Positions 24,312 to 56,069 of a stretch of 64,000 nt of DNA are shown piece by piece. The stretch lies in the sequence record LC597490.1, one strand, 5' to 3'. The number at the start of each line of letters is the position of its first letter. Within the stretch, counting starts at the first letter, position 1. A program made the position numbers and the translations under genes. The notes beneath the pieces were generated by a model. That model was not told the DNA's origin, did not search any database, and saw only the letters and a program-made list of their open reading frames with translations.

Positions 24312-24323
24312 TTAACTCACTCC

Positions 24324-25598: not shown

Positions 25599-25612
25599 TC
25601 ATCCTCACCTCT

Positions 25613-31600: not shown

Positions 31601-32575
31601 TTTTAGTAGTCCAAGGTCTTTGTACCATTTCATAACATCAAAGCGAATATAACCTTCATCATTTACGAACTTCTCATATGGCATACCAAGTGGAGCAGGT
31701 GCATATAAAGCAGAAGGTTTCGCAAGTAAGCTTTTATTCATGTTGATTGCGCTAGGTATTTTGTCACCCTTTAATACATCAGATTTATTTGCATGTGTTT
31801 TGTAAACAACAGCAACATAACGACCATACACATCTTTACGTGGTTCATGGTTTTCGATTCTATCTACATCGACAACAACGGCTCCAGAGCCACTCAACAT
31901 GTTATTCATATAGTCTCTTGCTTCTTCACCGATCTTGAAGGCTTGTTCTTTTGTTACTTTATAACGAGACATGTACCCAGCATTACGAGTTGTACCCGAT
32001 GCTTCACCATGGTCTTCTGTCTCAGGTGCTTGTACACCTACATAACGAATGTTTATACGTTCGCCTTTTTTAACATGCAGTCCAATCCATTTACCAGTAT
32101 CATATACAACCCCAGAGATTGTATCACCATCTTTTACTTTTACATCTTCTAATACAATGATACCTTCTGATACTGGTGTTTCTTCTGGAGGAGCTGCGAA
32201 TGCACGAGCCATTAATCTTGGAGCAAAAGCAGGTTCAGGTTTTTTATCTTCTCCTATTTGCCCTCTTTCATGGAATGGAGAATTGGATTCAACAGGAAGC
32301 TTTCTTACTACATGAGCATGTAACTCTATATTAGAAATTTTTCCTCCAAGCTTTCTTGTGAAACCATGACTTCCTTCAGTTTTATTGAAGGTAACGGAGA
32401 TAGGATATGCTTTATTTTTTTCAGCTACTGTTGTTAAGTATTCTGACAATCTGTTTCCAATAGAAACTTCATTATATCTAAAACGAACTCGTTCTCCATC
32501 TACATCCAGAGTAAGAAGCCAGAATGACTCTGGCTTCTCTTTCTGAACAGATAGGAGTCTCATTTCATACAACAT
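25613..32575 (-). CDS. Giant baseplate hub protein (2320 aa) with an N-terminal thermonuclease domain, tube-like domains, a degenerate lysozyme-like domain, a hub domain and hydrophobic C-terminal helices
   Basis: DGDT (D149)...RYVGVQAPE...DVYGRYVAVVY (SNase fold); AIQSIDVHRSRKQVADTAVISMTN...GARIHLRMGYG...VFNGKITEM...LVAQGDG (gp27/gpD-like hub); position upstream of the spike and wedge genes. Confidence 0.8.
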   Translation of the reverse strand: MLYEMRLLSVQKEKPESFWLLTLDVDGERVRFRYNEVSIGNRLSEYLTTVAEKNKAYPISVTFNKTEGSHGFTRKLGGKISNIELHAHVVRKLPVESNSPFHERGQIGEDKKPEPAFAPRLMARAFAAPPEETPVSEGIIVLEDVKVKDGDTISGVVYDTGKWIGLHVKKGERINIRYVGVQAPETEDHGEASGTTRNAGYMSRYKVTKEQAFKIGEEARDYMNNMLSGSGAVVVDVDRIENHEPRKDVYGRYVAVVYKTHANKSDVLKGDKIPSAINMNKSLLAKPSALYAPAPLGMPYEKFVNDEGYIRFDVMKWYKDLGLLKDMPDSGTVGEKLDDYFKESNKNNEEKSDLSEVKIKYDDVFDNSIDFLEPLDDRIEKMGDLQNQHRVRIGDVLLTVPPLGIQVNRTSHTERIKTLRTKGSILTKTGYASTSINLQLYFHDLEAINGTPWKTPEGMEYTMDGLRQLIAQFQKMPFLPIDNVYINTTLDIHDVALMNLSVETVPGFPHSIMANLTLAKFNSEAYMPQEVSLHDAINYPLMRWYYQRSLTKPANEAHTFLEPISGQLTNKISFSHADEAELEQRAEAIIALREMKPINVMRMEIDAKKSELGKVIADGKKASLLLEQYDKYQRHKKNGDIKDPDDLVEGHPVFQDMYNNRSARAVFDDTEFFAPHDSEVHDIMRGKLPVDPEEGSELPGYFRKKDTFKIFLWSIPNGEELKKHRNLWVKPKSEKEAVGYFYVTETSLGALKGIVERGRRAEQMAMTEIDRYNKLSDIVYVTESKLSMIDYTIPEKDMLVTSMQVMYENIFSSAQTRTGESPTMQFLGSQDVAVKLDLELTEDGVLKLRNLVDKIDEFARHYRVGISSGFLGIENQLLKLFGVRSVMIETLNVNTVPGFPGRFQGEMVLVAFNKTQRRQEELKGMSAVNGTDRDQLHSSTVDYKLQDAIIEYKMDQMEVYPDLELPTYKELNDVIEKTGAGIKEYKNKPGGIYVDPDFYASTKWTFRGEIKKQLEQRKEMKFSDSSGVHMSSSITSTDPMDVDKENMHVIEALEKKTPYVPYVFNWAEDNKGANSEKAAENATDSTGGAKGTGKPNAEVATWLKDKKNIDTPPPLDKWKTWGYGESEADFTKWRQNVVPKPVDFYKELYALIDARWVKNNNVYNDKNKATGGHTKLTYADPEDHLKLYTQYREGKKPTDNLIALMGQDKTNGMYYKEFMPTTRARIANYLKAFFHHQSKWNGFDSMSKPYVNGTFGGLGKVDIPNFATSVDDAQRFLWDWKYQLKVIVEDIYKFYVKARDSKEKEFEYRAWDYMLSAFYIGELKKDSIKEGAFPSIMSVWKSLYNEDKNRYRSPRQVVDPDIMKLVDGKSSHTVNVATSDKDALIKDLEDSKILEDVLGKEKAKALLSEIKKKSTSEVKKIYESYMKMHKDGKLKGYLDQVKIPTGGNTNMLIGKWATDLLALGWSKTFGGDGSLWDNWFGDGKSQETKNYEDQQKVEDIKDEEYNRLLFKQSPEEAFSQMAHNMLSYDMRGRLCRAFPTFQFFIIDEGRWMGSYRLWDNFYGFNAIQSIDVHRSRKQVADTAVISMTNVYSNLTARPTSEMYDSFAYSFWDNLVLDNPSDAILDSRSDLLNSMMLEVGARIHLRMGYGSSVRRLPTVFNGKITEMDTNDVITLVAQGDGLELTSVISGDPDDKTAKLFNAQEPRDIICKLLTSKGSWAKDVINVASENRFFRDNPLGVAHFGRPGDRTPDANFKFFNENYGEAAQNIYSANGLQTFSQWIYEDGTRIPMKWDGFILKFQGGDEDNILMPLYNQTIWDVATNISYCFPDYIAAVHPFETRSTLFFGKPYWNMAYRYDSTYAYNEKTKSWDRTLDTEYRRPYCQLHYIDDGMDIISNQIKASSDGMYTIVVGNYGGKPTPPVYADYDIDFSMQRTAVVDLPLISRTIPGWDMFTTEKQALYYSASTVRDYMKDMYKGRITIIGTPTLKPHDMIYMSDSVSDMNGNIGVEAVVHHFSHETGFISSVTPDAVVVIDDKAMLAHSNWWASVGMLAGATVMGLRAGNAATRKFANSATGRTLMTKGKAAGGWIVEKSMKNLVDTLPDTPETNELKKALDSYYKAKGKEGKNEAQAWERVKTAADNVSKKAQEWLKSGGVPGKDGKIMKGTKKLAARSLLTASKLPGAMKDMKSSSKFIKGVGTFASKGTPLGWIFSLTAGWLVESLFEKWRRSKTTNQAVLMMPLMHQGKEFTAGINGHKGMVVGDTKQGSMDNFLQGLGFDGSGDGFFAAVGGFMNFMADTDADDRKFTTSYQDLDNYGADKTQ

Positions 32576-32591: not shown

Positions 32592-35500
32592 TTAATACGT
32601 AAACCCTTTACCCATTACATTTGCAAATTGTGTTTGCATCCACTCATTGTCTAGCTTCTGAGTATTGTCATTTACGTTCATGTTCATGTTAAGTTGAGCG
32701 CTCGTTTGACGAGATAACTCTTCATGAACGAGTTTCGAAATATCTTGTTGAGACATTCCTTTTGCATCCTTCGCTCGAATCGAAATGTTGATGTTTTCAT
32801 TTGGTGTTACACGAGCAGTCGGGCCAGAAGATACTTGTACAGGAGGTGGCGGTGGTGGCGCCATATCAGTCTGCTCTTGGAATGCTTCTGGTGTTGGACC
32901 ACTTCTCATTAAAGCTGAAGCTGCCCACATTGCACCAAATCCAATTGCTCCTCCTATCATACCTGGTCCCATCTTATGTGCTAAACCAGACATCTTTTCA
33001 CTTACTGCTTCCGTTGCTCGAACAATACCTTTGTCTGCACCAACCATTTCTGTAAGAGTATTCTTACTTAGATGCGGTGTTTCAGTTATCGTATCAGCGA
33101 GAGAATCTTTTAATGCTCTATCTCTAAACGAGAATCGCTCAGAAATAAGGTTTTCGAAGTTCTCTACACCTTCATCATATATCTTTTTGAACTGAGGATT
33201 GTTTGCGGCGATGTTGTCTAAGTGAGGAGTTGGAACAGATTCATACTTACCACCAGCTACAATGTTAGAAACAATATCTGTATCTTTCGTACCACCAGAT
33301 TGCATACCCTTCAGATGAGGATTCTCAGTGAACGTGTTGCCAGACAATGAATACAGGTCTTGTAATTGGTCTAAGTGTGTATCCAAGCCATAATGGTTCA
33401 TACTTTCATTTGGGTTGCTTGTCTTGAAGATACCCAGTATGTCATTGGCTTTTCGAATCTTCTCTACACCAACAGAGTCAGGTCGGATAACCCCTTCTTT
33501 TAACATCTCAATTGCTTGGTAATGAGTTTGCATACGTTTTTCTACTTCACCCATTACGGCTTCAGCACCGTGATGCTCCATTACTTTAGCGGCATATTGA
33601 GACTCATCGTTTGTTAGCTGTTTACCCCAGCTCTTAACAATCTCTTCTGTTAAAGCACCAACACTAATTTTCTTAGAAGAAATGGAGTCCTGTGAAATCT
33701 TACTACTAAACTCCTCTAGGATATTCATAGCTTGGTAGGCTTCGTCTTGTGAGATTAAGCCTTTTTTAGCAAGAGCCTCATAAGTTGGATTCGTTAAAGT
33801 CTGCATACGTTGACGTAAGTTATCGAGTACCCCGATGTCAGCTTTACCAGTACGAGCTAGTAAACTTTCCATCTCATTTAGTCTAGTTGTTTTTGGACCC
33901 CAACCAGCTAACTCTCCATAATCTTGTGACCTTTGTATTTCTCGTTGCAGTTGCTCACCGACAGTTAGCTTCTCTGCATTGTAGTGCTTTAACTCATCTG
34001 CTGCCATTTCGACACCAGCTTGTTCATACAATGGAATACTTCCTTGTTGAACTTGTTGCATCTCTTTATGCACAGCACGAATGTCATCAACAGTATGTGT
34101 CTTACTTGCTTTATAGTGGTTAAATACAGCATTACCATTATCACCATCATGATCGGCTTTGAATACTTTTGCAGTACCAGCGCCAACATACATAGTGTTT
34201 GCTTCAATCGTATCATCCACAAGGTAACGAAGAACTCCGTTTGTTTGTTTATTGATAGTTGGATAACGGTTTGTAAATCCATATAAACCATTTGTTTTCG
34301 CAATTTCAAGTGCTTCTTCGCCCATACGTTCAGATTTAAACTGTTTCGCTAAAGATTCAAGACGAACTTTCTCGTCTCCTTTTGCTTTACCAGCTTGTGT
34401 CATACGCTCATTGTATTCTGTAAGAACAGCTTCATGACGTTTTGGAGCTAATGACTGAACGATATCGCCTTCTGCACCTGCAATCATACGACGCATTTGT
34501 TTCGGACCAATTAAGGCATCACCTTCAGCTAGTCCTTTCTCATGCATGTTAACCCCTTCAATATGGAAACGACCAGACATATCCATCTTCGCAGAGTACT
34601 TATCTAGAAGTGTTCCGCCATGAGAACCTGTCACCATATAGTTTAGGTATGACTTGTATGCATCTACTGATTTTTCAACAGCTTCCTTATTCTCTATTGT
34701 AGGAGCAGCTTGATATGCTTTAATGTTTCTCCAGATACCAAGGGAACGCTTGTCTACTTCATTCGCCATCTCCAGTGCTTCTGGGCCAGTACCGATTTGC
34801 ATTGTACCAGGAGACATCAAACGAACATACTTGTCTTTAAACTGATGTTCACTATTGCTTGGTAATTCAAGTAAGAATGTGCCGCCGTTTTTCTTCATGA
34901 GACTTCCGACAGTTTCTTCTACACCTTCACCAAGTCCCTCAATCTGTAACTGTAGGCTTCTTGGGTCAGCAAGTGTCATTGCATAGTTTCCAAGTTTACC
35001 TTTCGTCATCTCAGGGTCAGTAGCAACATTGAATTGTGGGTCACGGAATGCATGTTGAGAAATCTCTAAGTGACCATCCTTCATAACAGCTGTGTGCGTA
35101 CCATCTGGGTCTAAGTCCGTCATGATGTTTCCACCTGTACGGATAACAATGTCACCTTCTTGTACAACACCATTCTTTTGAAGAGTTGTATTTTGGTGGT
35201 CATTGATTGCTCGTAAGATACCAGAAGTTTCTTCAGCTAATGTCATTTCCTTACTGCTGTTTTGGATAGCAGAACGAGATGAGATTTGTTGACGAACAAA
35301 CTTACCAATCGTATGGTCTTTACGCCCTAAGATTTGGTCTGTACGATTTAGAATCGCTTCTTGTTCTTTATATGTCCAACGAACCAATCCCTCTTTGCCT
35401 GTCTCAGATACACCCATTTGGTCTTGCCATTTATGGAGGTCAGCTACTCGAAGTGTTAAGTTAACATTCTTTTCCTGACGATTTATTGGAGCTGTATAAT

Positions 35501-38500
35501 TAATAACGCCAGCTTTAGCCGCAAGTTCTTCTAACATTTGAGATGATTGTTTTACGAAGTCATACTCTTGTTGTGCTCCATATACAGGACCAGCGATTCG
35601 TCCATGTTCTGAATTCAATACGAGCTTACCAACAGTTAAGTTGCTTCCTTGTACAGGTTCAAGCTTCATAGCGATATCGCCATCAGGTATTTGGAAGATA
35701 CGTTGTGTCATATCTTTAATATCTGATACGTACTTTTTAACAGCTTCATTTTTAAAGTCCATTTCAGAGTTCGTGATTAGTCGGTTGGCTTCATCTACAG
35801 CTAATCGGACTTGACCTTCAATCTCTGTACCATGCATACCTTTACTGATATCACTTACAGTTACGATTGCTTTTGCATCACCTACACCAAGTGCTTCAAA
35901 GATATCTCTATCGAAGAAGTTTGTTGTAATACGATGGTTGGCATCCGTTAAGAACTTACGTCCATTTTCTGTTTTCTCAATCATTTGAGTTTGCAGTTTA
36001 CGAGTCTCTGGGTCATAACCTACGACATGGAATCCATCGCCCCATGCTTTTTCAGTTTGATATTGTGTATTCTGACCGATACTTACCTGACCAACTGTTA
36101 ATTTGCCATGGTCAGCTTTGCCTGGATTGTTAACACGACCACCAAGAATTGTTTCCAATTCAGTAGCGTTCTTCATAACATCTCCTTCAAGTCTCCACCC
36201 ACCATTGTCAGTTCGGACTGCACGGAATCCATCCTTCGCTAAATCATTGTTCTCAGCTTGTTTAAAGAAGTTTGCAATGTCACTGTGTAATTCAAATCCA
36301 CGTTGCAGGGTAAAGTTCTTCTCACGCTTCGTATCAAACACACTTTGTAATGACTTGTCGATGATAGACATACCCTCGAATGTAGTTAGATTCTTTTCGA
36401 ATCCTTGACCATATTTACGAACTAGGTCGGCATATGCATCAGGACTACTCTTTCTAAACTCATCCATACGATCTTTAATATCCATATCAGTTAATTCAAC
36501 AGCTTGAACGTTTAGTCCAGTTAATTCTTTCTGCTGAATAACAGAACCATCAGGCATACGAAGTGGAGCACTCAAAGCTTCAGATGCAGTTGTTGTAGCA
36601 GAAGTTTGAATCATACGCTCAATCTCAGCGCTAGTATATCCTTTCGCTTGTAGTCGGCTACGAATTTCTCTTTCTTCTAATGGAATATAGTTACGAGTTT
36701 TATTCATTTGCTCACGGGCTAAAATATTATAATGACCAAATGCCTGATAAGCTTGTGATGTTTCTCGTGTACCATAGATACCATTCAGTACTTGCTCACC
36801 ACTTACGTTACCAGCATTTAAATACATATTCTTTTCTCTAGATGCGAACTCTTGAATCGTACTATGGAATGCACGTTGTTCTCTCATTCCTAAATTCTCG
36901 AAGAAGGAAGTATATGATTGAGCAGACTTGTCTTTGATTTGTTGGTATTTGTTTTTTACGCCTAGTTCTTTTTCAAAACCATAGCGTTGGTCATACCATG
37001 AATACCATTCTTCAGCCCATCCACTTACATCAATCTTACTTCTAGCTGCACGTTGAGCTATCTGAGAACGCTTAGAATCATGCTTAGTAAGTTCTTTTGC
37101 ATTTGTGTATGGATTATTATGTGAGAACTTTTCTGTCGCTTCACGGGCTTGTCTACGTAGTCTAGAGTGAGCCTCTTGTTCGTTGCCTTTACGGATTAGC
37201 TCTTTTGTAGAACTAGAACGACGGACAGCACCATCTACTAATTGTTCTAATGGTGTACCAAGTATATCCTTACCATTCATTCTCATTGCTTTTAAATAAC
37301 CTGTCTTAGTAGAACCAGGCATTGTTACGTTCATGTTTTCATCCAATAATGGAATTGGAACAGAAGCAACTTTCGCATGTTCAATGATTTGGTTCGGCTG
37401 AAGACCCATTACTTCTTTCATTACAGTTTCCTGCATAACAGCAAGCATGTATGTCTTCTTGTGACCATCGTAGATTAATTGTGTAGCCATGCCATCTCCA
37501 GAGTAGGAGTTGATTAATTGTTTTACTACATCTTCAGCTTTCATCGTTTGAACGCCACGAGCAGTGTTACCACCACTGATTTGCATTAAACCATTTAAAG
37601 CTTCGTCATGTGTTTGTAATGCCTTTTGAAATTTCGCATCACTTAAATCAAGTGTCTTACCTTGAGACTTATGAGAAGCTCGCCCACTATCAATCCCTCG
37701 TCCGATAATATCTTCTAAGATAGCTGGGTTTTGGTATGCTTCCACTAAAGGTTTACGGATAGAACTTACATCTTTGATGTCTAAGTTGTGGTTAGCATAA
37801 GAAGAGTTATGAGAATACTCAGCTCTCATCATACGAGCCATACTTTCAATAACCATGTAAGGACTTTCCCCGTGTTGTAATTCACTAACCTGACGTAGTA
37901 ATTGAGATTTCTCAGATGATGTTAAGCCAGAAGCACCTGGTCTACGAACATGATTCACAACATCCTTCAAACGTTTCTTCACAATACCAATATCTACGCC
38001 ACCATTCTTACTGATGTTCTCTTTAATATCTAATCCCTTTGTAATGTAAGAACGGATATTACGAGCTGCGGTTGCATCAGTAGAAAGATCAATACGATGA
38101 GTTGTTTCACCAGGTAATTGTAATTCTAAGAATCCTTTACCATTTGGCATTCTCACTCGTGTTTCACCGCTACCATATCTCTCATCTAATTGTTTAGCGA
38201 TATTACTTAAAGCAACGTTCTGACTGAATGGTGTAAATCCATTTGAACCTGGAAGGTTTGCATCGAGTCTTGCCATTGCAGTTTGCCATACCTTCTTCTC
38301 TTGTGTTAAACGTTTCTCCATAACAAGAAGGTCACGATATTGAGAGTTTGGTAAACCAGTAGGTGTTCCGCCAACAGTACGTTGAACATTAGGATGGTTC
38401 TGTACATAATCAGCAATATCTGATTTACGGATTTCACCACGTTTGATTTTCTCTCTCCCCTCATTTAATGCATCAAGGGCAGCGTACATACGCTCAAGCA

Positions 38501-40139
38501 TCCAACGTCCTCCACCAGATTCAGTTGTAGAGAACATCTTATCGTAAGTACGTCTTGCACGGTCTAATCCATATGCAGTTCTATTACCCGCATTAGGGTT
38601 TGCTAATTGAGGAACTTCTTCAGAAGGTTTAAATACTTGGTGGAATACACTTTGAAGGTCAGTCTCACTGTCTCGTGAAATGAAGTGGAATAAATCTGTC
38701 TCTAAGTTACGAAGTAAGATACCACTTTGTTTATTATCAGAGTTCTTTAATTTACCGCTGAATGTTTTTACAACCTCATACTCTGATTCTTTAGAGATTG
38801 GGTTTACGTTTCCTTTATAAGCAGGAACCAATTGTTTCTTTTCTGGGTCCCATCGGAATACACCATCATTTGCTCCGCTTTCATATCCTGGCAAACCTGT
38901 CATTGAGAATACTTTATCTCCAGCCTTAATGGAATTACTATTCCAAGTACCATTCATACGATTACCTGCATCAGCATTTACGATGCCTTCTACATTCAAC
39001 TTATCTAAGAATACTTTATTGGCAACATCTACAGTTAAGTCTGTATCCTGTAAAGCCATGTGAGTTGCTTGTGCGATTTCACCAGTCATGCCGTAAAAGT
39101 TAGCTAGTGTTTGGTTTCGTAAACCATGCTTAGAACTTAGGTCAGCAAATAAAGAATTGGCAATAGATAATGTATCGAATGAGTCTGCTTTCTGAATATC
39201 AGAAGCTAAACGAGTTAAAGCCATTCTAGTCTTTCTATCATGCTTAGGTATGCTAGGAACTAGCTGGTCTTTAATATAATCACGCATGAAAGGAATATCA
39301 TATGTGTTAATATTTTGCCCACCTAGTTTTAATTCTTTTCCATTACGTAATGTTTTTAAGAATTCTCTAGCTACTACATGAGGTTCTGTACCATGCTTCA
39401 CAACATTCTCAAATCCACGTTTTGCTGCTTTAATTTGGTCATGTGTAAATAAGGTACCTTTCATAGCTTTTTGATCTTTATTCTGTTTTAAGATAGTAGT
39501 CATATCACCATCTTTACGGAAGTATCCATTACCAAATGCATCATCTGCTCCGTATAAGATTAAGTCATTCACGGTACGTCTTTCATCATCCGTTAAGTTG
39601 ATACCTGTAATATGAATCCCCTTTAATTTCTCAAAGATATCCATTACATGCTTTTGTTCTTTCTCACCTGGTTTTACTAATAAAGAAAGAGCCTTATCTG
39701 TTTTGCTGAATTGAAGTTTACCTGCGGCATCTCTTTCTACTTTTGTTTGACGGAAACCAAACTCTAAAGGTGAGTACCATTCTCCGCCATGAGTACCAAT
39801 ATTCTCAATATCGAAGAACGTGAAGATATCTCCAGCCTTCATATTTTGAATCGTTTGGATGGATTTTTGAGCATGGGATTTCGTGCTTGTACTTGGGATA
39901 TGGATAGACTTAAACATATTCATTTGAGAATCAGCAGCGTTTGTTAATATCTTACCGTTGTAAGTAGCCGCTTTGAATAACTCATCAGCACCTGTTGTTC
40001 TTGGCTTCTTTTCTCGTTGAGACATTTGAGCCACAATGTACGATGCTTCAGGGTTTGTATTTTGTTTAATATAAGTACCATGAAGGGGGTCGTATTTAAA
40101 CTGACCCCCATTTTTAATTCCCCCTTTATTTTCTTCCAT
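32592..40139 (-). CDS. Putative virion-associated single-chain two-barrel RNA polymerase fused to an N-terminal DEDDh 3'-5' exonuclease (2515 aa), encoded in the tape-measure position
   Basis: Beta-prime-like NRYPT (R1958) and ADHDGD (D1996/D1998/D2000; nt 34140-34157). Beta-like TFEG (E1255), GRK-x7-R (K1395/R1403) and SKGMHG (M1435). Exonuclease motifs FDIE (D110/E112), GQNINTYD (D281) and HMALQD (H360/D365). Confidence 0.85.
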   Translation of the reverse strand: MEENKGGIKNGGQFKYDPLHGTYIKQNTNPEASYIVAQMSQREKKPRTTGADELFKAATYNGKILTNAADSQMNMFKSIHIPSTSTKSHAQKSIQTIQNMKAGDIFTFFDIENIGTHGGEWYSPLEFGFRQTKVERDAAGKLQFSKTDKALSLLVKPGEKEQKHVMDIFEKLKGIHITGINLTDDERRTVNDLILYGADDAFGNGYFRKDGDMTTILKQNKDQKAMKGTLFTHDQIKAAKRGFENVVKHGTEPHVVAREFLKTLRNGKELKLGGQNINTYDIPFMRDYIKDQLVPSIPKHDRKTRMALTRLASDIQKADSFDTLSIANSLFADLSSKHGLRNQTLANFYGMTGEIAQATHMALQDTDLTVDVANKVFLDKLNVEGIVNADAGNRMNGTWNSNSIKAGDKVFSMTGLPGYESGANDGVFRWDPEKKQLVPAYKGNVNPISKESEYEVVKTFSGKLKNSDNKQSGILLRNLETDLFHFISRDSETDLQSVFHQVFKPSEEVPQLANPNAGNRTAYGLDRARRTYDKMFSTTESGGGRWMLERMYAALDALNEGREKIKRGEIRKSDIADYVQNHPNVQRTVGGTPTGLPNSQYRDLLVMEKRLTQEKKVWQTAMARLDANLPGSNGFTPFSQNVALSNIAKQLDERYGSGETRVRMPNGKGFLELQLPGETTHRIDLSTDATAARNIRSYITKGLDIKENISKNGGVDIGIVKKRLKDVVNHVRRPGASGLTSSEKSQLLRQVSELQHGESPYMVIESMARMMRAEYSHNSSYANHNLDIKDVSSIRKPLVEAYQNPAILEDIIGRGIDSGRASHKSQGKTLDLSDAKFQKALQTHDEALNGLMQISGGNTARGVQTMKAEDVVKQLINSYSGDGMATQLIYDGHKKTYMLAVMQETVMKEVMGLQPNQIIEHAKVASVPIPLLDENMNVTMPGSTKTGYLKAMRMNGKDILGTPLEQLVDGAVRRSSSTKELIRKGNEQEAHSRLRRQAREATEKFSHNNPYTNAKELTKHDSKRSQIAQRAARSKIDVSGWAEEWYSWYDQRYGFEKELGVKNKYQQIKDKSAQSYTSFFENLGMREQRAFHSTIQEFASREKNMYLNAGNVSGEQVLNGIYGTRETSQAYQAFGHYNILAREQMNKTRNYIPLEEREIRSRLQAKGYTSAEIERMIQTSATTTASEALSAPLRMPDGSVIQQKELTGLNVQAVELTDMDIKDRMDEFRKSSPDAYADLVRKYGQGFEKNLTTFEGMSIIDKSLQSVFDTKREKNFTLQRGFELHSDIANFFKQAENNDLAKDGFRAVRTDNGGWRLEGDVMKNATELETILGGRVNNPGKADHGKLTVGQVSIGQNTQYQTEKAWGDGFHVVGYDPETRKLQTQMIEKTENGRKFLTDANHRITTNFFDRDIFEALGVGDAKAIVTVSDISKGMHGTEIEGQVRLAVDEANRLITNSEMDFKNEAVKKYVSDIKDMTQRIFQIPDGDIAMKLEPVQGSNLTVGKLVLNSEHGRIAGPVYGAQQEYDFVKQSSQMLEELAAKAGVINYTAPINRQEKNVNLTLRVADLHKWQDQMGVSETGKEGLVRWTYKEQEAILNRTDQILGRKDHTIGKFVRQQISSRSAIQNSSKEMTLAEETSGILRAINDHQNTTLQKNGVVQEGDIVIRTGGNIMTDLDPDGTHTAVMKDGHLEISQHAFRDPQFNVATDPEMTKGKLGNYAMTLADPRSLQLQIEGLGEGVEETVGSLMKKNGGTFLLELPSNSEHQFKDKYVRLMSPGTMQIGTGPEALEMANEVDKRSLGIWRNIKAYQAAPTIENKEAVEKSVDAYKSYLNYMVTGSHGGTLLDKYSAKMDMSGRFHIEGVNMHEKGLAEGDALIGPKQMRRMIAGAEGDIVQSLAPKRHEAVLTEYNERMTQAGKAKGDEKVRLESLAKQFKSERMGEEALEIAKTNGLYGFTNRYPTINKQTNGVLRYLVDDTIEANTMYVGAGTAKVFKADHDGDNGNAVFNHYKASKTHTVDDIRAVHKEMQQVQQGSIPLYEQAGVEMAADELKHYNAEKLTVGEQLQREIQRSQDYGELAGWGPKTTRLNEMESLLARTGKADIGVLDNLRQRMQTLTNPTYEALAKKGLISQDEAYQAMNILEEFSSKISQDSISSKKISVGALTEEIVKSWGKQLTNDESQYAAKVMEHHGAEAVMGEVEKRMQTHYQAIEMLKEGVIRPDSVGVEKIRKANDILGIFKTSNPNESMNHYGLDTHLDQLQDLYSLSGNTFTENPHLKGMQSGGTKDTDIVSNIVAGGKYESVPTPHLDNIAANNPQFKKIYDEGVENFENLISERFSFRDRALKDSLADTITETPHLSKNTLTEMVGADKGIVRATEAVSEKMSGLAHKMGPGMIGGAIGFGAMWAASALMRSGPTPEAFQEQTDMAPPPPPPVQVSSGPTARVTPNENINISIRAKDAKGMSQQDISKLVHEELSRQTSAQLNMNMNVNDNTQKLDNEWMQTQFANVMGKGFTY

Positions 40140-40151: not shown

Positions 40152-43100
40152 TTAGCTAAATACTTTTGTCCAGTTCGTGTTTAGTTCCTGGATAATTTCT
40201 GCGCTTCTATCTTTCATCATGTCGAAACCGACATTAATCATATTCTCATCTTTAGATGGTGAACGTTGAACGGTTACCTGTACATCATCAAGACCTGCTC
40301 CTCGAAGGATTTTTTCGATACGAGATGAGTTGATAAGGTCACCCATTAAACGTGGTTGCATGTCGATTGCATCTACTCCAGAAGCATCTGCTCTCGTTTC
40401 ATCACTACCCCAGAATCCAAACTCTGTAAGTTCCATACCTTCATTGCGAACAACCTTTAACTTAATGTCATTCAATGCGGTATCTGCACGCCAACCTTCC
40501 CAGTTTTCACTAGGTAAGTAATGTGTCTTGAAATAAGATTCATTACTCTCTACTTCATCCATCTTCATTCCCCACTTAGCTTGGAAGAAGCGACGTTCAT
40601 TTTCAGGAACAAGTCGAAGGATTTCCTCCCTTTCATCAGGAGCAGCCTTCATGAATTCTGCAAAGTACTCTCTATCCTTTTTCGGTAGAGAACGGAAGAT
40701 TTTTGTCATGTCACCATTTGGGTCAGCCCCGAATAATGTTGACTCATATTCCGCTTTATATTGAAGAGCTAGTAATGTATGTGGCCCGATGTCCACACTA
40801 CTTCTATCCTCACCAATTGTTTTCAGATTCTCACGGATACGTTTTAACTGGAACTCCGTAAGCTCATCATCACCATAACCCATTTTTTTCTGCATTGCCA
40901 ATTGTTTTTTGTAAAGTTCTAGAGTTTTACGAGACTGTTTATTTTTCTTACCACGCTTGCTGTTTTCGTCTAGAAGTTCTTTTAAATCTACACCTTCTGT
41001 ACGTTTCGCTTCTTCCGCAGCCTTCTCATATAAACCTTTAAACTTCATGTATTTCAAACGGTCAAAGTACTCGTTAACTTCCCTTTCCTTCTTACGTCTT
41101 TCTGGTAACCAAACTTCACTATTGCCAGGAGTATGCTCACTTAGTACTCGTAGAGCCGCAGCCCCACCACCTACTAATGCACCAATCCATTTACCGTAGT
41201 ACTTACCTTTACCTCGTCCAGCTAACCAACCAATACCATAACCTTGAGCAGATGCGATTAATGGATTACGAGAAGCCATTGTTTCAATCATAGGTTGTAA
41301 CCATCCAGAGATAGGTTCTTCCCATGGTCTCCATGCTTTACCATATACTTCAGTACGTTTGTATTGCTCTAATGGAGAACGAACTTGTAAGAACTTATCA
41401 GCGATAGGTCCGATGATTGGTAAGCTTGGTAATAAGTCATGGCTTAGAAACTCCCACGTTTTACCGACAGTAATTTGATCGTTACTGAATAAAGCTTGTG
41501 TAGCAGTCGCACTACCATCATCTTTCACACTTACGTTGTTCTCTCCGCCGAATCCCATGAAACCACCGAAGGAGCGATTCGCTAACATGTAGTTGACGTT
41601 CTGACCTTTTTGAGTCATGTAGAATGGCATACCTTCTTCACTGTTACCAGCGTATACAACAGCACGCATTGTATTCATCATGTCATCACGGACACGGAAT
41701 AGTGGGTCGGCATCTAATCCTACTCGAATCTTCGCACCTTCATAAACGAACTGACGCAATAAAGCCTGAGCTTCTTCATCATCTTTCTTGATAGACACAC
41801 CAGCTAGTTTAATAGGGTTGTTCGGGAATTCTTCTGTTAAGAATGTATTCTGGTCAAGAATCTTCGTAACAGTTACATCTTGCATATCAATGTCAGCATT
41901 TGTGAATCGTTTATCAAAGAATTGGTATTTCTTTTTACGCTCACGGACTTGCGTCATTACTTCTTGGTACTCATCTTTCATATCATCTGTTAAACGACCA
42001 TCTTGGTTCATTTGAGAAACAACACGTTTCCACATACGATATTGGTCAGAGTAAGGAGCAACGTCAGCTAAGATACGGAATCTATCGAATGCACCGTATT
42101 TGCTTCCATCTTCTTGAGAGAACTCATCTGGATGTAGTTTGTATAATCTTTCATACGCTTCACCAGGAAGTCTCATTTCCCCTTTACTTACTTTTACATA
42201 AGGGTCACCATATTTAAATGGTAAGAAGTATTCAGCACCAGGCATCCAGTCTGGCATTTCATTTCTAATTGGATTGTAGTAATTTTTATTCGGGTCACGA
42301 GGAATGTAACGACGGAAAATCTCGGAGAATCCGCCACCAACCATATCAGCTCCACCTAGTTCCATATCCCAGAAACTACGTGCCATACTATCCATACGAG
42401 AACTTGGCTCAAGTGTTAAACCACGTCCACCCTCTTGGAATCCAGATAATGCTTTTGTACCGAAACCGTAGATACCAAGAACCTCAGATGCAGAGTAGAA
42501 CATATCACGAGCTATACCAGATGGATTGCCAATCTCACCGATATCAGCTAAGTCTGCTAATGCTTCAGGGTCACGTAAGCTTTCTAATTGAGTTAATGGT
42601 CTCATCTTAGATTGGTTAACAGCTGCTTGACCTCTCATGGTGATACGCTGGTTTATTGCAGTTAAGGCTGCACTAGAGTAATCTCCAGCTCCAACCATTC
42701 GTTCAGTACCTTCGATAGCAACGCCACCTTCAGCACTTGCTCCACCACCAAGACCAATCGCACCACCGCCACCAGAACCATAACCTTCTTCATATCCACC
42801 ATCACCAGAAGGCATGTCTTCATATACTTGAAGTCCACCAGCTGGCATTAATTGAATACTAGCACCTTCACTATAAGCATCGAATCGTCTACTAGATGCA
42901 GCGATTACTTCATCTTGATATCGTTCATGCTGTTCTTGTAAGTCTGCTCTGACAGTACGAGGAGAAATGATTCGTCCAATTGTATTATCAGCAAGAGGAC
43001 CAACAATAGGGAAGTCGGAAAGGATTGTTCCACCTTTGATTGGATACGGTCTGTCATCTTCGTGTTTCTTTTCTAGATAACTATGACCATTTAACATGTA

Positions 43101-46100
43101 TGTTAATGGAGCTAAAGGATTCGATAATGTAGGAATCCAAGTGTTTGCCCAATAATCATTTGCACTACCATAAAGAGTATCAGTGTATTCATAATCACTC
43201 TTTGCTTTACGATACCAGTTTGGTTCCCATCTCTCGATCTTTCCACCAGCCCAAGGTGTATTAGAACCTAGACCCCAGTAACGACCTTTACGTACTGCAT
43301 CTTCACCTGACTCATAATACTTGTTTACTTCTTCTTCTGAACGGAAATCAGAGAATGCACCAAGTGTTAAGAAGTCGAATGCTTTTAAGAATGGCAATTC
43401 ACCTAGTTGTCCTGCACCTGCAAATGGAGCAGTTAACTCTTTACCAATACGGTTAATACCAAGTGTTTCTTTCACGCCAGCTAAATCACCATGCATATTT
43501 ACATACGTATCAGCTAGGCTATCACTTACTGTATCTCCAGTCATATCATCTAGGTATTGTAATTCTTTATAACCTATATAAGGAAGTAAAATACGTTTCC
43601 CTAATTGGTTAACGAGAATACTTTGCATACTACCTTTGTCTTTTTGGGCAAGACCTAATCCTACTTTAGCTAACGCATTATCCATACGTTCAATACCATA
43701 GTAGAAGAATGTTGTAGCAGTTGTTACATCACCAAGGTTATTACGCCCAGCGAATGGTTGCTTTAATACTTCTTTTGTACTATTCAGGAATGCAGATACG
43801 GAACTAGAACCATCTTCAACTAATTGTTCGTAGTTTTCTTTTGCCCAGCCAATACCTTTTGCATCACGCATGATACCATAACCTGTTGTAGGTCCGAAGT
43901 AGTTCGGTGGTCTCATACCTGGTCCAGTACTTGTTAGTGGATTGAAGTCTTTAATACTCTCATGAATAGCTTGACCAAATACACTGTCTTCACCTTTCAT
44001 TAATCCAGCAAATTCTTCTAATGCATCGTCACCATAGGTATTACGGTTACGGTATACATCCTTCCACCATGTACGCATTTTAGAAAGGACTTCCATATTA
44101 CGTACTTCAGATAATGCATTCTTATCTAAGTCCCCTTCTAGGATTGCATTACGAACCAGACGACTCGTACCTTCTGTTGTCATATTAACTTGGTGAATCG
44201 AGTGTTGTTGGATTAAACGTTTTGCATCATCTAATATACCAACTAATTCTGTTTCACCTGTTTCTAATGCAGAAGCAAACTCAGGAAGGATTGCACCATT
44301 ATCACTAGAGATACGTTGGTTCTTTAAGAAACCTTGAGGAGAACGACTGAACTTTGTCCACATCTCATCTAGTTGTTCTGCTAGTGCTGTATTACCTTTT
44401 GAGATTTTACCATCGAACTCTGGAGAACCAATGGCTTGTCGTAAACGTCCTACTGCTCCCATGATTTCTTCTGTTGTATTTAATTTCGTTAAATCAATAT
44501 CAACATTCCCATACGCTTTCTTTACATGTGGATTTAAGAAATCAACTGTTGTACTAGAGAAGTTGGTAGTCTTTTCATTAAATGAACTGTAGATATTCTT
44601 ATAGATACCTTCTACTTCATCTAAATCTTTGTACTGACCTTTCATCATTTGACGAACTTGGTTAATCTCCCAGTCAGGGTCTTTAAACTTCGTGAACATA
44701 CTCTTAATACGTGAGAAGCTAGACTCTGTTTCTTGTAATCCAAATCCAAAGAAGTTTTTAACTGGCCCGATATCATCATAGTTTCGTACATGTAAATTCG
44801 CCATACTAGCTGGCATACGGCTGAATACACCGAATCGTCTATCAGCTAAGTAAACACCTTCATCTACTTTACTCATATCATTCATACGGTATACATTACC
44901 ACCAACGAAGATATGGTCGTCTGCTAATGTACCAGCAGCTGCATCTCTATTATGTGCCGCAGGATGTTGTACTGTTCTTGCTCCTTGTAAGAATGGGTCA
45001 ATATCCCCACGCTTTAATACATAACTTTTAGGAGCTTCACGAATTGTTTTCACACTTGAATAGTGAGCAAGGTCTAATGGGTTAAATCGTAGATATGGGA
45101 GTTGCACATTATCTTTTACAATATCAAGGAAATTGAAACCGCCCTCAATACTGTTACGCATATCAACAACATTACCTGACTTATCTACGAATAAGCCTGG
45201 GTCTACATGTAGGTCTCCTAGCTCTTTATCGGACTTCATATGAATACGGAAGTTGTTGGCTAGGTTCTTAGGAGACATCTTACTAGCTTTTTCTAATGGA
45301 ACTAAGAAGTCAGCACTATCTTGGTCAATCAAACCTCTGTTTAATGTTTCTTTTAATGTCAGTGGCTTTAAACCTCGGCGTTGTGCAGCCTCCATCCACT
45401 TACCATTCTTATCAATGGAGTGGTCGTCTTTAAATGCTTTCACACGGATATCACGATACTCTTTATAATTTTTCTTCGCAATTTCCTTTACATTCTTATC
45501 CTTCTTAACAGTGACCATCGTTTGGTAAACGGTCTCCGCTGTCTTCTTACGTTCTAATTCATCAACGAAGTCTAATGCATTACCAATGTTGTTCTTCTTT
45601 GCATTCTCTCTTGAATGCATCTTTAATAGTTCGTCTACCTTTTTAAGTGACGGTGCTTCGAAGAATAAGTCATCACGTTTTTGACGAAGGACATTCTCAA
45701 GTCCACCTTCCTTCATTCTTTCAGGAAGAACAGAACTTAATCGTTTCATTGTCTCTTCAAATTGAGTAGCACGTACAAAGTCCTTACGTTCCTTTTGAAG
45801 ACCTTTCATCATAGACAGATATTCATTTTGAATCTTTGTTGGTCTTCCACCAAGAGGAGTTCGTGCCATACGCATTCTCTCTTCTTGCAAGTCTTTAAAT
45901 GTACGAGTGAAACGATTATCGAATCTATCTTTGTTTCTCATATGGAACAGAGGATTCTTTTGATCTAATGCATGGTCTAATGATTTTAAGTACGAACCAA
46001 CTTCACTCATTGCATTTCCAACAGGAGTATTGCGGGCTGACATTTTAGCAGCTTGAATAGCGGCTCCTCTCATAGCCATACTAGATTCATGTGTAACTAC

Positions 46101-46229
46101 CTTTATTCCTTTACCGATTGCTCGTCTGTATTTATAACCTAGTGCAGCACCGCCTACTATACCTGCAAGCTCTAAAGGACTGGAACCTTCTTGCTCTGGT
46201 AAGGGCTGGCGTCCAGTTTGTTCTGCCAT
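40152..46229 (-). CDS. Tape-measure-like / ejection protein (2025 aa) with hydrophobic segments and a degenerate thermonuclease-fold domain
   Basis: Directly follows the chaperone pair; helical composition; Gly/Ala hydrophobic stretches (LAGIVGGAALGY; GYGIGWLAG...WIGALVGGGAAAL); VTKILDQNTF...IKLAGVS...MRAVVY...NVNYMLAN resembles SNase without its catalytic residues. Confidence 0.65.
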   Translation of the reverse strand: MAEQTGRQPLPEQEGSSPLELAGIVGGAALGYKYRRAIGKGIKVVTHESSMAMRGAAIQAAKMSARNTPVGNAMSEVGSYLKSLDHALDQKNPLFHMRNKDRFDNRFTRTFKDLQEERMRMARTPLGGRPTKIQNEYLSMMKGLQKERKDFVRATQFEETMKRLSSVLPERMKEGGLENVLRQKRDDLFFEAPSLKKVDELLKMHSRENAKKNNIGNALDFVDELERKKTAETVYQTMVTVKKDKNVKEIAKKNYKEYRDIRVKAFKDDHSIDKNGKWMEAAQRRGLKPLTLKETLNRGLIDQDSADFLVPLEKASKMSPKNLANNFRIHMKSDKELGDLHVDPGLFVDKSGNVVDMRNSIEGGFNFLDIVKDNVQLPYLRFNPLDLAHYSSVKTIREAPKSYVLKRGDIDPFLQGARTVQHPAAHNRDAAAGTLADDHIFVGGNVYRMNDMSKVDEGVYLADRRFGVFSRMPASMANLHVRNYDDIGPVKNFFGFGLQETESSFSRIKSMFTKFKDPDWEINQVRQMMKGQYKDLDEVEGIYKNIYSSFNEKTTNFSSTTVDFLNPHVKKAYGNVDIDLTKLNTTEEIMGAVGRLRQAIGSPEFDGKISKGNTALAEQLDEMWTKFSRSPQGFLKNQRISSDNGAILPEFASALETGETELVGILDDAKRLIQQHSIHQVNMTTEGTSRLVRNAILEGDLDKNALSEVRNMEVLSKMRTWWKDVYRNRNTYGDDALEEFAGLMKGEDSVFGQAIHESIKDFNPLTSTGPGMRPPNYFGPTTGYGIMRDAKGIGWAKENYEQLVEDGSSSVSAFLNSTKEVLKQPFAGRNNLGDVTTATTFFYYGIERMDNALAKVGLGLAQKDKGSMQSILVNQLGKRILLPYIGYKELQYLDDMTGDTVSDSLADTYVNMHGDLAGVKETLGINRIGKELTAPFAGAGQLGELPFLKAFDFLTLGAFSDFRSEEEVNKYYESGEDAVRKGRYWGLGSNTPWAGGKIERWEPNWYRKAKSDYEYTDTLYGSANDYWANTWIPTLSNPLAPLTYMLNGHSYLEKKHEDDRPYPIKGGTILSDFPIVGPLADNTIGRIISPRTVRADLQEQHERYQDEVIAASSRRFDAYSEGASIQLMPAGGLQVYEDMPSGDGGYEEGYGSGGGGAIGLGGGASAEGGVAIEGTERMVGAGDYSSAALTAINQRITMRGQAAVNQSKMRPLTQLESLRDPEALADLADIGEIGNPSGIARDMFYSASEVLGIYGFGTKALSGFQEGGRGLTLEPSSRMDSMARSFWDMELGGADMVGGGFSEIFRRYIPRDPNKNYYNPIRNEMPDWMPGAEYFLPFKYGDPYVKVSKGEMRLPGEAYERLYKLHPDEFSQEDGSKYGAFDRFRILADVAPYSDQYRMWKRVVSQMNQDGRLTDDMKDEYQEVMTQVRERKKKYQFFDKRFTNADIDMQDVTVTKILDQNTFLTEEFPNNPIKLAGVSIKKDDEEAQALLRQFVYEGAKIRVGLDADPLFRVRDDMMNTMRAVVYAGNSEEGMPFYMTQKGQNVNYMLANRSFGGFMGFGGENNVSVKDDGSATATQALFSNDQITVGKTWEFLSHDLLPSLPIIGPIADKFLQVRSPLEQYKRTEVYGKAWRPWEEPISGWLQPMIETMASRNPLIASAQGYGIGWLAGRGKGKYYGKWIGALVGGGAAALRVLSEHTPGNSEVWLPERRKKEREVNEYFDRLKYMKFKGLYEKAAEEAKRTEGVDLKELLDENSKRGKKNKQSRKTLELYKKQLAMQKKMGYGDDELTEFQLKRIRENLKTIGEDRSSVDIGPHTLLALQYKAEYESTLFGADPNGDMTKIFRSLPKKDREYFAEFMKAAPDEREEILRLVPENERRFFQAKWGMKMDEVESNESYFKTHYLPSENWEGWRADTALNDIKLKVVRNEGMELTEFGFWGSDETRADASGVDAIDMQPRLMGDLINSSRIEKILRGAGLDDVQVTVQRSPSKDENMINVGFDMMKDRSAEIIQELNTNWTKVFS

Positions 46230-46775: not shown

Positions 46776-46787
46776 GTCCTCCCAAAT

Positions 46788-46814
46788 AAAAAAGAGAGGG
46801 GATATCCCCCTCTC
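46788..46814 (-). terminator. Intrinsic terminator between the two chaperone genes
   Basis: GAGAGGGG-GATAT-CCCCTCTC then TTTTTT. Confidence 0.85.
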
Positions 46815-46829
46815 CCCTTATTATATTTC

Positions 46830-50982: not shown

Positions 50983-50983
50983 C

Positions 50984-53091: not shown

Positions 53092-53099
53092 ACAATCAC

Positions 53100-53624: not shown

Positions 53625-53636
53625 ACAGCAACCTCC

Positions 53637-55160: not shown

Positions 55161-55170
55161 ATCACCTCAC

Positions 55171-55193
55171 AAAAAAGGGCGGTGTTACCCGCC
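55171..55193 (-). terminator. Intrinsic terminator
   Basis: GGCGG-GTAACA-CCGCC-C then TTTTTT. Confidence 0.8.
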
Positions 55194-55202
55194 ACTTATT
55201 TA

Positions 55203-56048: not shown

Positions 56049-56069
56049 ATTGCACGCTCCTTTTATTTA

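Follow-up and report, generated by a model that had tools for sequence, protein, structure and literature searches.

Predicted DEDDh exonuclease and two-barrel RNA polymerase modules in a giant tail-module protein of Bacillus phage vB_BceM_WH1

Analysis of a 64,000-nucleotide window of record LC597490.1, from the jumbo Bacillus phage vB_BceM_WH1, strongly supports the conclusion that gp095 (32592..40139, minus strand), an uninterrupted open reading frame of 2515 amino acids, is a giant tail-module protein that joins a DEDDh exonuclease, a single-chain two-barrel RNA polymerase (RNAP) and a conserved C-terminal tail in one chain. Coordinates are those of the window, and all the features described lie on its minus strand. 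The protein is 100% identical to 'virion structural protein_gp095' of LC597490.1, and its sole annotation is the depositor's label, 'virion structural protein'. The exonuclease comes first in the chain and the RNAP, at residues ~1380-2030, occupies the C-terminal half. We regard the identity of these three modules as very probable.

Exonuclease, polymerase and C-terminal modules

The predicted DnaQ-like DEDDh 3'-5' exonuclease domain was delimited by profile matches, a structural model and conservation at residues ~95-400 (38940..39857). The sequence-only reading of this DNA had placed an intact DEDDh exonuclease at the gp095 N-terminus, at 39040-39830; all the motifs do fall within that interval, with exactly the residue numbers it gave, but the domain is larger. 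ExoI is FDIE (residues 109-112, with D110 and E112; 39804..39815) on strand beta1 of the model, ExoII is GQNINTYDIPF (residues 274-284, with N276 and D281; 39288..39320) at the N-terminus of helix alphaB, and ExoIII is HMALQD (residues 360-365, with H360 and D365; 39045..39062), whose H-x4-D spacing, as opposed to Y-x3-D, defines the DEDDh subtype. Far from being lost in most homologues, the five catalytic residues persist across 102-104 of the 104 distant relatives, among which identity falls as low as 15%. The ExoI D and E are found in all 102 aligned giant family members, D281 in 103/103, N276 in 101/104, and the ExoIII H and D each in 104/104 relatives. Only 31 of the 2508 positions of the family alignment are at least 90% conserved, and 11 of these 31 fall in the exonuclease domain. 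Strong purifying selection on the active site of the family is strongly supported by this pattern of conservation.

Profile searches and modelling also bear out the exonuclease assignment, at levels far above chance. PHROG 192, 'DNA polymerase exonuclease subunit' (phrog_192), matches residues 244-428 (E 1.1e-10), and a 22-member family profile searched against 177,635 PDB sequences reaches solved DEDDh exonucleases at E 4e-9, the PolC exonuclease at 1e-3 and TREX2 at 3e-3. In a library of 1.84 billion sequences, the family profile reaches bona fide DnaQ/PolC-type proteins, named so by NCBIfam. The AlphaFold2 model of residues 85-450, built from an alignment of only 5 sequences, has a mean pLDDT of 70.6, lower in the ExoIII region, and shows the topology beta1-beta2-beta3-[insert]-beta4-alphaB-beta5-alphaC, with ExoIII opening the last core helix. 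The insert, family-specific and of ~85 residues, lies between ExoI and ExoII (beta3/beta4) and contains a conserved motif with L193 and Y196. The best Foldseek matches of the model are RNase T (E 3.9e-4) and E. coli Exonuclease I (2e-3), with a probability of 1.0 each, so that with moderate confidence the domain is predicted to adopt the canonical RNase H-like DEDD fold.

DnaQ/epsilon, the PolC exonuclease, TREX1/2, RNase T and Exonuclease I have in common with gp095 the D-x-E, N-x3-(F/Y)-D, 'DTL' and H-x4-D motifs and the RNase H-like fold. The identity to the structural matches is only 12-16%, and these DEDDh relatives act in replicases or as stand-alone enzymes, whereas the gp095 domain sits inside a 2515-residue tail protein. 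All the families closest in sequence are DNA exonucleases, which favours DNA over RNA as the substrate; at 10-16% identity, homology cannot tell a DNA from an RNA substrate. RNase T, the best structural match, acts on both DNA and RNA.

The putative RNAP of the earlier reading is strongly supported by profile matches, the NRxPT and DxDGD motifs and two near-invariant basic residues in the beta-like barrel. The putative beta'-like double-psi beta-barrel region (residues ~1832-2027; 34059..34646) contains SAKMDMSGRF, the beta'-type motif NRYPT (residues 1957-1961; 34257-34271) and DHDGD, the DxDGD metal triad (residues 1996-2000; 34140-34154). An alignment to E. coli RpoC matches all three in the same order, and R1958, P1960, D1996, D1998 and D2000 are kept in 102/102 family members. 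On this side, the family profile matches phiKZ gp55 in the PDB at E 9e-5, RPA1/RPB1 at 1e-4 to 1e-3 and bacterial beta' at 2e-3 to 2e-2.

The evidence for the beta-like barrel is weaker than that for the beta' barrel. The putative beta-like double-psi beta-barrel region (residues ~1383-1479; 35703..35993) carries the basic pair K1395/R1403, which the E. coli alignment pairs with beta K1065 and K1073, respectively. Of 101 members, 96 have K and 3 have R at position 1395, and all 101 have K or R at position 1403; bacterial RNAP beta chains in the PDB are matched by the family profile at E 0.01-0.03. Beta-type subunits have a fourth invariant Asp, the equivalent of Rpb2 D837 (PMC2919709); the 250 residues that precede K1395 contain no position at which Asp reaches 90% conservation. 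Modelling of residues 1500-2330 with AlphaFold2, from 5 sequences only, gave a pLDDT of 56, a pTM of 0.34 and meaningless Foldseek matches. Taken together, the motifs and profiles strongly support a single-chain two-barrel RNAP that is predicted to synthesise RNA.

The conserved C-terminal tail (residues ~2385-2515; 32595..32987) consists of a Gly-rich hydrophobic segment, a proline run and a terminal block with the invariant D2491. Within the family, it and the RNAP active-site block share the highest conservation of any stretch, and in distant members tblastn detects the tail alone. It matches the C-terminus of gp146 of phage 0305phi8-36 (HMM E 1.4e-3; BLASTP E 0.003) and an ORF of Moorella phage MTATph1. 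These similarities strongly support a C-terminal tail common to gp095 and to tape-measure-position proteins that lack the RNAP.

Tail-module context and family distribution

Within the tail module, the gp095 gene occupies the tape-measure position. The tape-measure block starts with gp097 and gp098 (46245..47312), annotated in GenBank (LC597490.1) as two tail chaperonin genes and arranged as ORF143/144 of 0305phi8-36 (PMC2147016). Upstream of gp095 lies gp096 (40152..46229), a giant virion protein of 2025 amino acids and the orthologue of 0305phi8-36 gp145 (BLASTP E 1.8e-114). Immediately downstream lies the baseplate hub gp094 (25613..32575; 2320 amino acids), the orthologue of gp147, which matches ORF147 'baseplate hub protein' (tblastn E 8e-48; BLASTP 2.5e-53) and phrog_20474 (E 6e-217). 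The WH1 gene order of sheath, tube, two chaperonins, gp096, gp095, hub gp094, lysin and baseplate is repeated in eight related loci; a further locus, L003, is too short to display it.

Because its flanking genes are orthologous to gp145 and gp147, gp095 is taken as the positional orthologue of 0305phi8-36 gp146. Either of the two giants gp096 and gp095 could set the tail length. The earlier name 'putative virion RNAP' holds as regards the polymerase and is too narrow as regards the protein, which is not merely a virion RNAP and is the tape-measure-position giant of the tail module. The KLEB27-3 orthologue gp034 is labelled 'structural protein'. Given the depositor's label and the orthologues, it is likely that gp095 is located in the virion or tail and is ejected.

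The fusion, whose conservation the sequence-only reading had marked for survey, is shared by nearly all of the family. We found 104 distant relatives of 1950-2660 amino acids, and 100 of them have all four modules; every RNAP-bearing member (100/100) keeps an intact exonuclease. The shared layout across more than 100 uncharacterised phage lineages suggests an injected toolkit that would handle the incoming genome.

The exonuclease is also present where the RNAP is missing. Like gp095, 0305phi8-36 gp146 (2537 amino acids) has the same flanking orthologues, a homologous C-terminal tail and an intact DEDDh domain; unlike gp095, it has no RNAP module, and its exonuclease lies mid-chain (~1200-1720) with larger inserts. 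GenBank (EF583821) names it 'hypothetical tape measure protein' and notes its detection as a virion protein by mass spectrometry; neither record EF583821 nor the cited literature on 0305phi8-36 mentions its exonuclease. Together with gp146, 9 further gp146-type relatives, ranging down to 34% identity to it, keep DIETTG, GQNVAxAD and HxAxxD and have no DxDGD. The homologue of Moorella phage MTATph1 has the exonuclease (E 5e-21) and the C-terminal tail and no RNAP. The gp095-type and gp146-type exonuclease domains could have been acquired independently, since their positions in the chain differ and their similarity is no stronger than that to cellular DnaQ.

Comparison with phage RNA polymerases

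The closest precedent of gp095 is the tape-measure-fused RNAP of Thermus phage P23-45, which is without the exonuclease. P23-45 gp96 is a giant tail protein at the tape-measure position with a single-chain two-barrel RNAP and a DxDGD motif (Chaban et al. 2024, PMC10770324). Its proposed function, after ejection, is transcription of the earliest genes during DNA entry; the same paper makes no mention of an exonuclease (PMC10770324). P23-45 is a siphovirus, and its 5002-residue gp96 begins with the RNAP, followed by transmembrane and metallopeptidase domains, whereas gp095 belongs to a myovirus. The hydropathy of gp095 shows no strong transmembrane segment, and no peptidase family match was found in it. 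WH1 also differs from P23-45 in that no second, non-virion two-barrel RNAP was found in the part of the genome scanned (~95%; record positions 50,001-62,000 lie outside the scan). Membership of gp095 in the gp96 family was considered and rejected, as the gp96 chain is absent from the 60 best PDB profile matches of the gp095 family and the domain order differs. By analogy, gp095 may work like gp96 while standing outside its family.

YonO of prophage SPbeta resembles gp095 in having both barrels in one polypeptide, in coming from a Bacillus phage and in showing no obvious trigger loop, but it is of ~100 kDa, has no exonuclease and is no virion or tail protein. YonO does not cleave transcripts intrinsically (Forrest et al. 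2017, PMC5467207). Phage 0305phi8-36 encodes its YonO-like RNAP apart from gp146, in orf99 (Hardies et al. 2007, PMC2147016). When 50,697 phage records were searched by tblastn with the gp095 polymerase core for similarity to YonO/orf99, only WH1, Edson and KLEB27-3 were returned at E<=1, three members of the gp095 family, and the classification of gp095 as a YonO-like RNAP was rejected.

The crAss-like phage phi14:2 provides a further comparison. Its gp66 is likewise a giant, virion-packaged, single-chain two-barrel RNAP encoded between two giant virion protein genes (Drobysheva et al.), and it differs from gp095 in belonging to a podovirus-like phage, in its head/cargo association, in its DFDxD motif and in having no exonuclease domain. 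In vitro, gp66 transcribes single-stranded or denatured DNA and not double-stranded DNA (bioRxiv 10.1101/2020.03.07.982082).

Functional analogues of an exonuclease working beside a polymerase are found in other systems, such as the DEDDh exonuclease nsp14 beside the coronavirus RNA polymerase nsp12, and the exonuclease subunit DP1 beside DP2 in the two-barrel archaeal PolD. The polymerase fold of nsp12 is unrelated, as is the Mre11-like exonuclease of DP1; in both cases the activities reside in separate subunits, neither of which is a virion tail protein.

Possible roles of the exonuclease

The reading that we favour, with a probability of roughly 0.4, is that the exonuclease processes the 3' ends of entering phage DNA. 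According to this reading, the tail would contain few copies of gp095, which, as other tape-measure or ejection proteins do, would exit the virion together with the DNA or before it; its RNAP would then produce the earliest phage transcripts. The host RNAP, steered by the phage's own sigma factors, would take over at later stages; this hand-over is proposed because WH1 encodes two sigma factors and a second two-barrel RNAP was not found in the scanned part of the genome. The exonuclease would work locally and stoichiometrically on the 3' ends of the DNA; by resecting one strand it would make single-stranded DNA available for use by a polymerase that prefers such a template, for annealing or repair of the genome ends, or for both. 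The idea of a single-stranded template is based on the preference of the comparable virion RNAP gp66.

Some observations count against a role at DNA ends. At a terminus, a 3'-5' exonuclease removes the template strand of the genes that point inward from the end, so that the exposed template can serve only genes transcribed toward the terminus. Also, no terminal repeat was found in the WH1 record, which looks arbitrarily opened. Moreover, the retention of the exonuclease in all the RNAP-bearing members is also what a functional coupling to transcription predicts.

A stricter form of the DNA-end reading, which we hold to be unlikely, makes transcription dependent on the exonuclease: the N-terminal domain would resect the entering genome end and so provide the single-stranded template for the fused RNAP. 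The exonuclease would then be expected nearest the leading end of the packaged DNA, the polymerase may, like crAss gp66, fail to open duplex DNA, and the infection programme would start without a sigma factor, promoter melting or a host protein. For relatives that lack the RNAP, 0305phi8-36 among them, resection would contribute to annealing of the ends or to recombination. If true, transcription would be started in a novel way, and 'tape measure' proteins with enzymatic activity would form a new class.

The main rival to processing of DNA ends is proofreading or rescue of transcripts, the first role suggested by the sequence-only reading, in which the exonuclease would trim misincorporated or backtracked 3' ends of nascent RNA, somewhat as the coronavirus exonuclease does; nsp14, which accompanies an RNA polymerase, counts in its favour. 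The gp095 RNAP is presumed to lack the intrinsic, trigger-loop-dependent cleavage that cellular RNAPs perform, the top structural match is RNase T, and the unbroken association of polymerase and exonuclease in the family fits this explanation. YonO, itself a single-chain two-barrel phage RNAP, is error-prone and has no hydrolytic proofreading (PMC5467207), which speaks for this explanation. Against it, the exonuclease lies ~1450 residues away from the active site of the polymerase, the nearest sequence families degrade DNA, and no two-barrel RNAP is known to use a separate exonuclease. The positional orthologues without an RNAP keep an intact DEDDh site, which indicates that the exonuclease is not just a proofreader for the fused RNAP and shifts the balance from transcript proofreading towards a role on DNA ends. 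We do not think that the domain is a dedicated proofreader of its polymerase, and the broader explanation is a possible but rather doubtful one. That the two-barrel module might instead be a DNA polymerase or primer-extending enzyme, proofread by the DEDDh domain as in archaeal PolD, is very improbable. Replicases are typically built with an epsilon-like exonuclease joined to the polymerase, and PolD demonstrates that two-barrel enzymes can polymerise DNA, but the significant profile matches of the polymerase region are all RNA polymerases, with PolD absent from the 60 best in the PDB, and the phage has its own DnaE-type polymerase, primase and helicase. The Arg of NRxPT, whose beta' equivalent contacts the 2'-OH of the NTP ribose, is also invariant.

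It is just as hard to believe that the exonuclease fold has lost catalysis and serves as a structural or nucleic-acid-binding module, for instance by retaining the DNA end inside the tail. Dead domains normally lose their catalytic residues, and here the five metal-binding and general-base residues persist in nearly all relatives and in the gp146-type branch. Another explanation, an unlikely one, detaches the exonuclease from transcription and has it attack host nucleic acids or counter defences at the start of infection, with 3' ends of host DNA or RNA, or nucleic-acid components of defence systems, as candidate targets. The context showed no matching defence system or inhibitor, and tape measure proteins occupy the tail lumen in only few copies per virion, which is more in keeping with one local substrate than with degradation in bulk. 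The presence of the exonuclease both with and without the RNAP agrees with such an attack, as does a nuclease domain in the neighbouring hub gp094 (SNase / EcnA-like, E 5e-7), which, alongside that of gp095, suggests that virion-borne nucleases recur in the WH1 tail module.

Exonuclease domain of gp095

The gene encoding gp095 (window 32592..40139, minus strand, 2515 codons) belongs to Bacillus phage vB_BceM_WH1 (LC597490.1, 229.8 kb, host B. cereus), as identified by tblastn. A crAss-like identity had been suggested by the three giant ORFs and was rejected, since the tblastn result places the window in a Bacillus myovirus. In LC597490.1 the protein is deposited solely as 'virion structural protein'. 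Among cultured phages, tblastn revealed close or moderate relatives only in Edson (94% identity) and vB_BauM_KLEB27-3 (27%; host Bacillus australimaris); the IMG/VR search added one related locus, and a scan of genome contigs recovered no relatives. Clustering at 50% identity divides the family into at least 100 clusters, from Bacillus myoviruses and metagenomic relatives, whose members are so far labelled only 'hypothetical' or 'structural', with a functional name in no source.

A sequence-only reading had proposed that a DEDDh exonuclease is fused to a putative virion RNA polymerase (RNAP) in this protein. Its residue numbers proved exact: ExoI (FDIE) occupies residues 109-112 with D110 and E112, ExoII (GQNINTYDIPF) residues 274-284 with D281, and ExoIII (HMALQD) residues 360-365 with H360 and D365, all on the minus strand inside 39040-39830. 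The 'DNA polymerase exonuclease subunit' family PHROG 192 covers residues 244-428 (E 1.1e-10). A profile of the domain, built from five full-length homologues and searched against 1.84 billion representative proteins, gave 136 matches; about 104 of these are giant proteins of 1950-2660 aa with the exonuclease at residues ~70-480, and further matches are ~200-aa proteins named DnaQ, PolC-type or DEDDh exonucleases by NCBIfam. Against the PDB, a 22-member full-length family profile matched solved DEDDh exonucleases (E 4e-9), as well as the PolC exonuclease domain and TREX2. Only this profile succeeded: no usable matches to PDB sequences were obtained with the 5-sequence profile, or by phmmer with single-sequence queries of gp095, its giant neighbours gp096 and gp094, or the isolated domain. 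The domain as sole query gave no matches in a word-indexed search, and NCBIfam applied to gp095 cut into five 500-aa pieces gave only a marginal DEDD match.

The AlphaFold2 model of residues 85-450 (pLDDT 70.6) has the DnaQ topology, with ExoI on the first strand, ExoII starting the helix after strand 4, ExoIII starting the last core helix, and ~85 extra residues inserted after strand 3 and before strand 4. RNase T and E. coli Exonuclease I rank highest among the PDB matches of the model (probability 1.0), and comparison with a viral structure library gave phage DnaQ-like proteins. Conservation was analyzed in 104 family representatives with identity as low as 15%. D110 and E112 are each kept in 102/102 aligned sequences, D281 in 103/103, and H360 and D365 each in 104/104. 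Conservation reaches at least 90% at just 31 of the protein's 2508 positions; the exonuclease contributes 11 of these, among them the Asn of ExoII and the 'DTL' Asp characteristic of epsilon/PolC-type enzymes. An RNase H-like fold is thus modelled for the domain, and its catalytic residues are retained in 102 to 104 of the 104 homologues. These data indicate that the N-terminal domain of gp095 is an intact predicted DEDDh exonuclease under selection to remain active.

Just past the exonuclease, a conserved block at residues ~500-620 (window ~38280-38640) contains D526, R530 and E614 and a motif around DRARRxYxKMFS. It is weakly common to proteins of the type of gp146, the tape-measure-position protein of phage 0305phi8-36 (profile positions 446-608), matches no family or structure, and may be an exonuclease-associated domain.

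Polymerase module and tail context

Single-sequence searches gave no RNAP matches. With the 22-member profile, residues ~1832-2027 matched beta'-type subunits, at E 9e-5 for phiKZ, 1e-4 to 1e-3 for Pol I and Pol II, and 2e-3 to 2e-2 for bacteria, and residues ~1383-1479 matched bacterial beta subunits (E 0.01-0.03). The motifs SAKMDMSGRF, NRYPT and KADHDGD align in order with RVDYSGRSVI, NRAPT and NADFDGD of E. coli RpoC, and in RpoB the aligned counterparts of K1395 and R1403 are K1065 and K1073. R1958, P1960, D1996, D1998 and D2000 are kept in 102/102 family members; K or R occupies position 1395 in 99/101 and position 1403 in 101/101. Eight residues are said to be invariant across all two-barrel RNAPs (PMC2919709), and seven of them were found in the gp095 family, the eighth not being identified there. 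The profile matches and these residues support the proposal of a putative RNAP in the same chain. A model of this region, built from only five sequences, was poor and its Foldseek matches were meaningless. Both sets of active-site residues, exonuclease and RNAP, are strongly constrained in this protein of the tail module.

The gene order of that module is sheath, tube proteins, chaperonins gp098 and gp097, gp096, gp095, gp094, lysin and baseplate genes. Upstream of gp095, gp096 (2025 aa) is the orthologue of 0305phi8-36 gp145 (E 1.8e-114); downstream, gp094 (2320 aa) is that of the baseplate hub gp147 (E 2.5e-53). Therefore gp095 is the positional orthologue of gp146 (2537 aa), which GenBank lists as a 'hypothetical tape measure protein' and as found in virions by mass spectrometry (PMC2147016). 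All related loci of sufficient length share this order of the three giants, including members at 15-17% identity. Gene order and positional orthology together identify gp095 as the giant tail protein in the tape-measure position. The three giants are not paralogous to one another, and Kyte-Doolittle scans of all three revealed no strong transmembrane helix.

The tail chaperone genes gp097 and gp098 (window 46245-47312, minus strand) are two separate genes and not a frameshifted pair, an unusual arrangement described for 0305phi8-36 ORF143/144. In three related phages the gp096 orthologue is split (L002:2893-9986; L006:7623-14776, KLEB27-3 gp031-033; L009:2630-9984): one ORF of ~1350-1436 aa and another of ~550-680 aa are separated by a ~210-aa ORF and non-coding gaps, which looks like an intron or homing-element insertion into a giant tail gene. 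The gp094 ORF (25613..32575, minus strand) encodes an N-terminal domain of staphylococcal-nuclease/calcium-activated nuclease (EcnA-like) type at residues ~145-264 (window 31784-32143; NCBIfam E 5.3e-7; phrog_452 'endonuclease' E 2.6e-5), and its homologue in locus L002 has a faint Pfam SNase match. This is a second predicted virion-borne nuclease within the tail module. The 3' end of gp094 and the lysin gene gp093 are spanned by a composition outlier at 24001-26000 (GC 0.425, GC skew -0.234, versus ~0.38 and about -0.1 in the rest of the window).

Relatives without a polymerase and known systems

The C-terminal ~150 residues of gp146 match those of gp095 (HMM E 1.4e-3; BLASTP E 0.003), and the family exonuclease HMM also matches gp146 (E 9e-8). 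Its DEDDh motifs lie in mid-chain, with ExoI YLDIETTG near 1221, ExoII GQNVADAD near 1439 and ExoIII HLARAD at 1685. gp146 lacks DxDGD, and the polymerase section of the gp095 family profile does not match it; the two-barrel RNAP of 0305phi8-36 is encoded on its own by orf99, within the non-structural arm (PMC2147016). Nine more gp146-type proteins, to 34% identity, keep the three exonuclease motifs and lack the polymerase. In Moorella phage MTATph1 the gene in the tape-measure position has the exonuclease (E 5e-21) at residues 842-1084 of a 1309-aa ORF and is then interrupted by an annotated IS transposase, beyond which a 313-aa ORF bears the conserved C-terminal tail (L013:8860-16216, CDS0027-0031); here too a polymerase module is absent. 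These proteins without RNAP are our most informative result on function. Exonuclease and C-terminal tail are thus the widely shared parts of the tail protein, and the putative RNAP is a module of one large branch, present in 100/104 giants.

RNAPs fused to a tape measure came to light only in 2024, when a single group of Thermus siphoviruses was reported to have this 'previously unsuspected association', and P23-45 gp96 of that group is the closest precedent of gp095; no exonuclease is mentioned for gp96 (PMC10770324), whereas gp095 has a predicted one. The gp095 family, found in myoviruses, is a second, independent lineage of this kind. Relative to the known fusions, the new element is the conserved predicted DEDDh exonuclease, also present in the classic 'tape measure' gp146. 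For 0305phi8-36 and c-st, Iyer et al. 2021 list only separate YonO-like RNAPs. Full-text literature searches found no paper combining two-barrel, DEDD and phage and no mention of the gp146 DEDDh domain, which is undescribed in PMC2147016 and PMC2919709.

Possible roles of the exonuclease

We infer that the tail would contain only a few copies of gp095 and release them along with the DNA, that its RNAP would make the earliest transcripts, and that the host RNAP would take over later, directed by the phage sigma factors gp018 and gp030. In this scheme the exonuclease would act on the 3' ends of the incoming phage DNA, a role to which we assign a probability of about 0.4. It is favoured because the exonuclease persists where no RNAP is fused, because its closest sequence relatives are DNA exonucleases, because a few-copy tail protein fits one local substrate, and because the related virion RNAP crAss gp66 transcribes ssDNA and not dsDNA (bioRxiv 10.1101/2020.03.07.982082). 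This reading is limited by geometry: 3'-5' resection spares the strand with its 5' end at the terminus, which provides a template only for terminus-directed genes. No terminal repeats were found between the two ends of the WH1 record, which appears to have been opened at an arbitrary point.

The main rival, proofreading or rescue of transcripts, is possible and somewhat less probable; it is favoured by the lack of intrinsic cleavage in YonO (PMC5467207) and by the retention of the exonuclease in every RNAP-bearing member. Less probable again, by a small margin, is an attack on nucleic acids of the host or its defences, as a few-copy protein fits a single local substrate better than bulk degradation. 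We consider it very improbable that the two-barrel module, with its matches to beta' and beta subunits, is a PolD-like DNA polymerase, and equally so that an exonuclease with such invariant catalytic residues is a dead domain.

The gp095 family suggests that the tape-measure RNAP also arose in Bacillus myoviruses and metagenomic relatives, with a second predicted enzyme, a proofreading-type DEDDh exonuclease, added to it. Action on the incoming DNA end would explain template supply in vivo for ssDNA-preferring, sigma-less single-chain RNAPs; action on RNA would make it the first external proofreader of any two-barrel RNAP. Either way, these phages, culturable on Bacillus, offer a tractable system for post-ejection roles of tail-lumen proteins, and the exonuclease domain (~350 residues) should be expressible.

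Across ~95% of the WH1 genome (the record outside 50,001-62,000), we detected no second, non-virion two-barrel RNAP and, with the family exonuclease HMM, no second DEDDh gene or separate DnaQ-like gene. Outside the window, DNA polymerase III alpha is annotated as three CDS, gp235-237 (LC597490.1 194353-198551; L011:18353-22551), and the gaps of 400-700 bp among them hint at introns, inteins or mobile insertions. The record's final gene, also outside the window, bears the deposited name 'enterotoxin_gp300' (229026-229796; L016:3126-3896).
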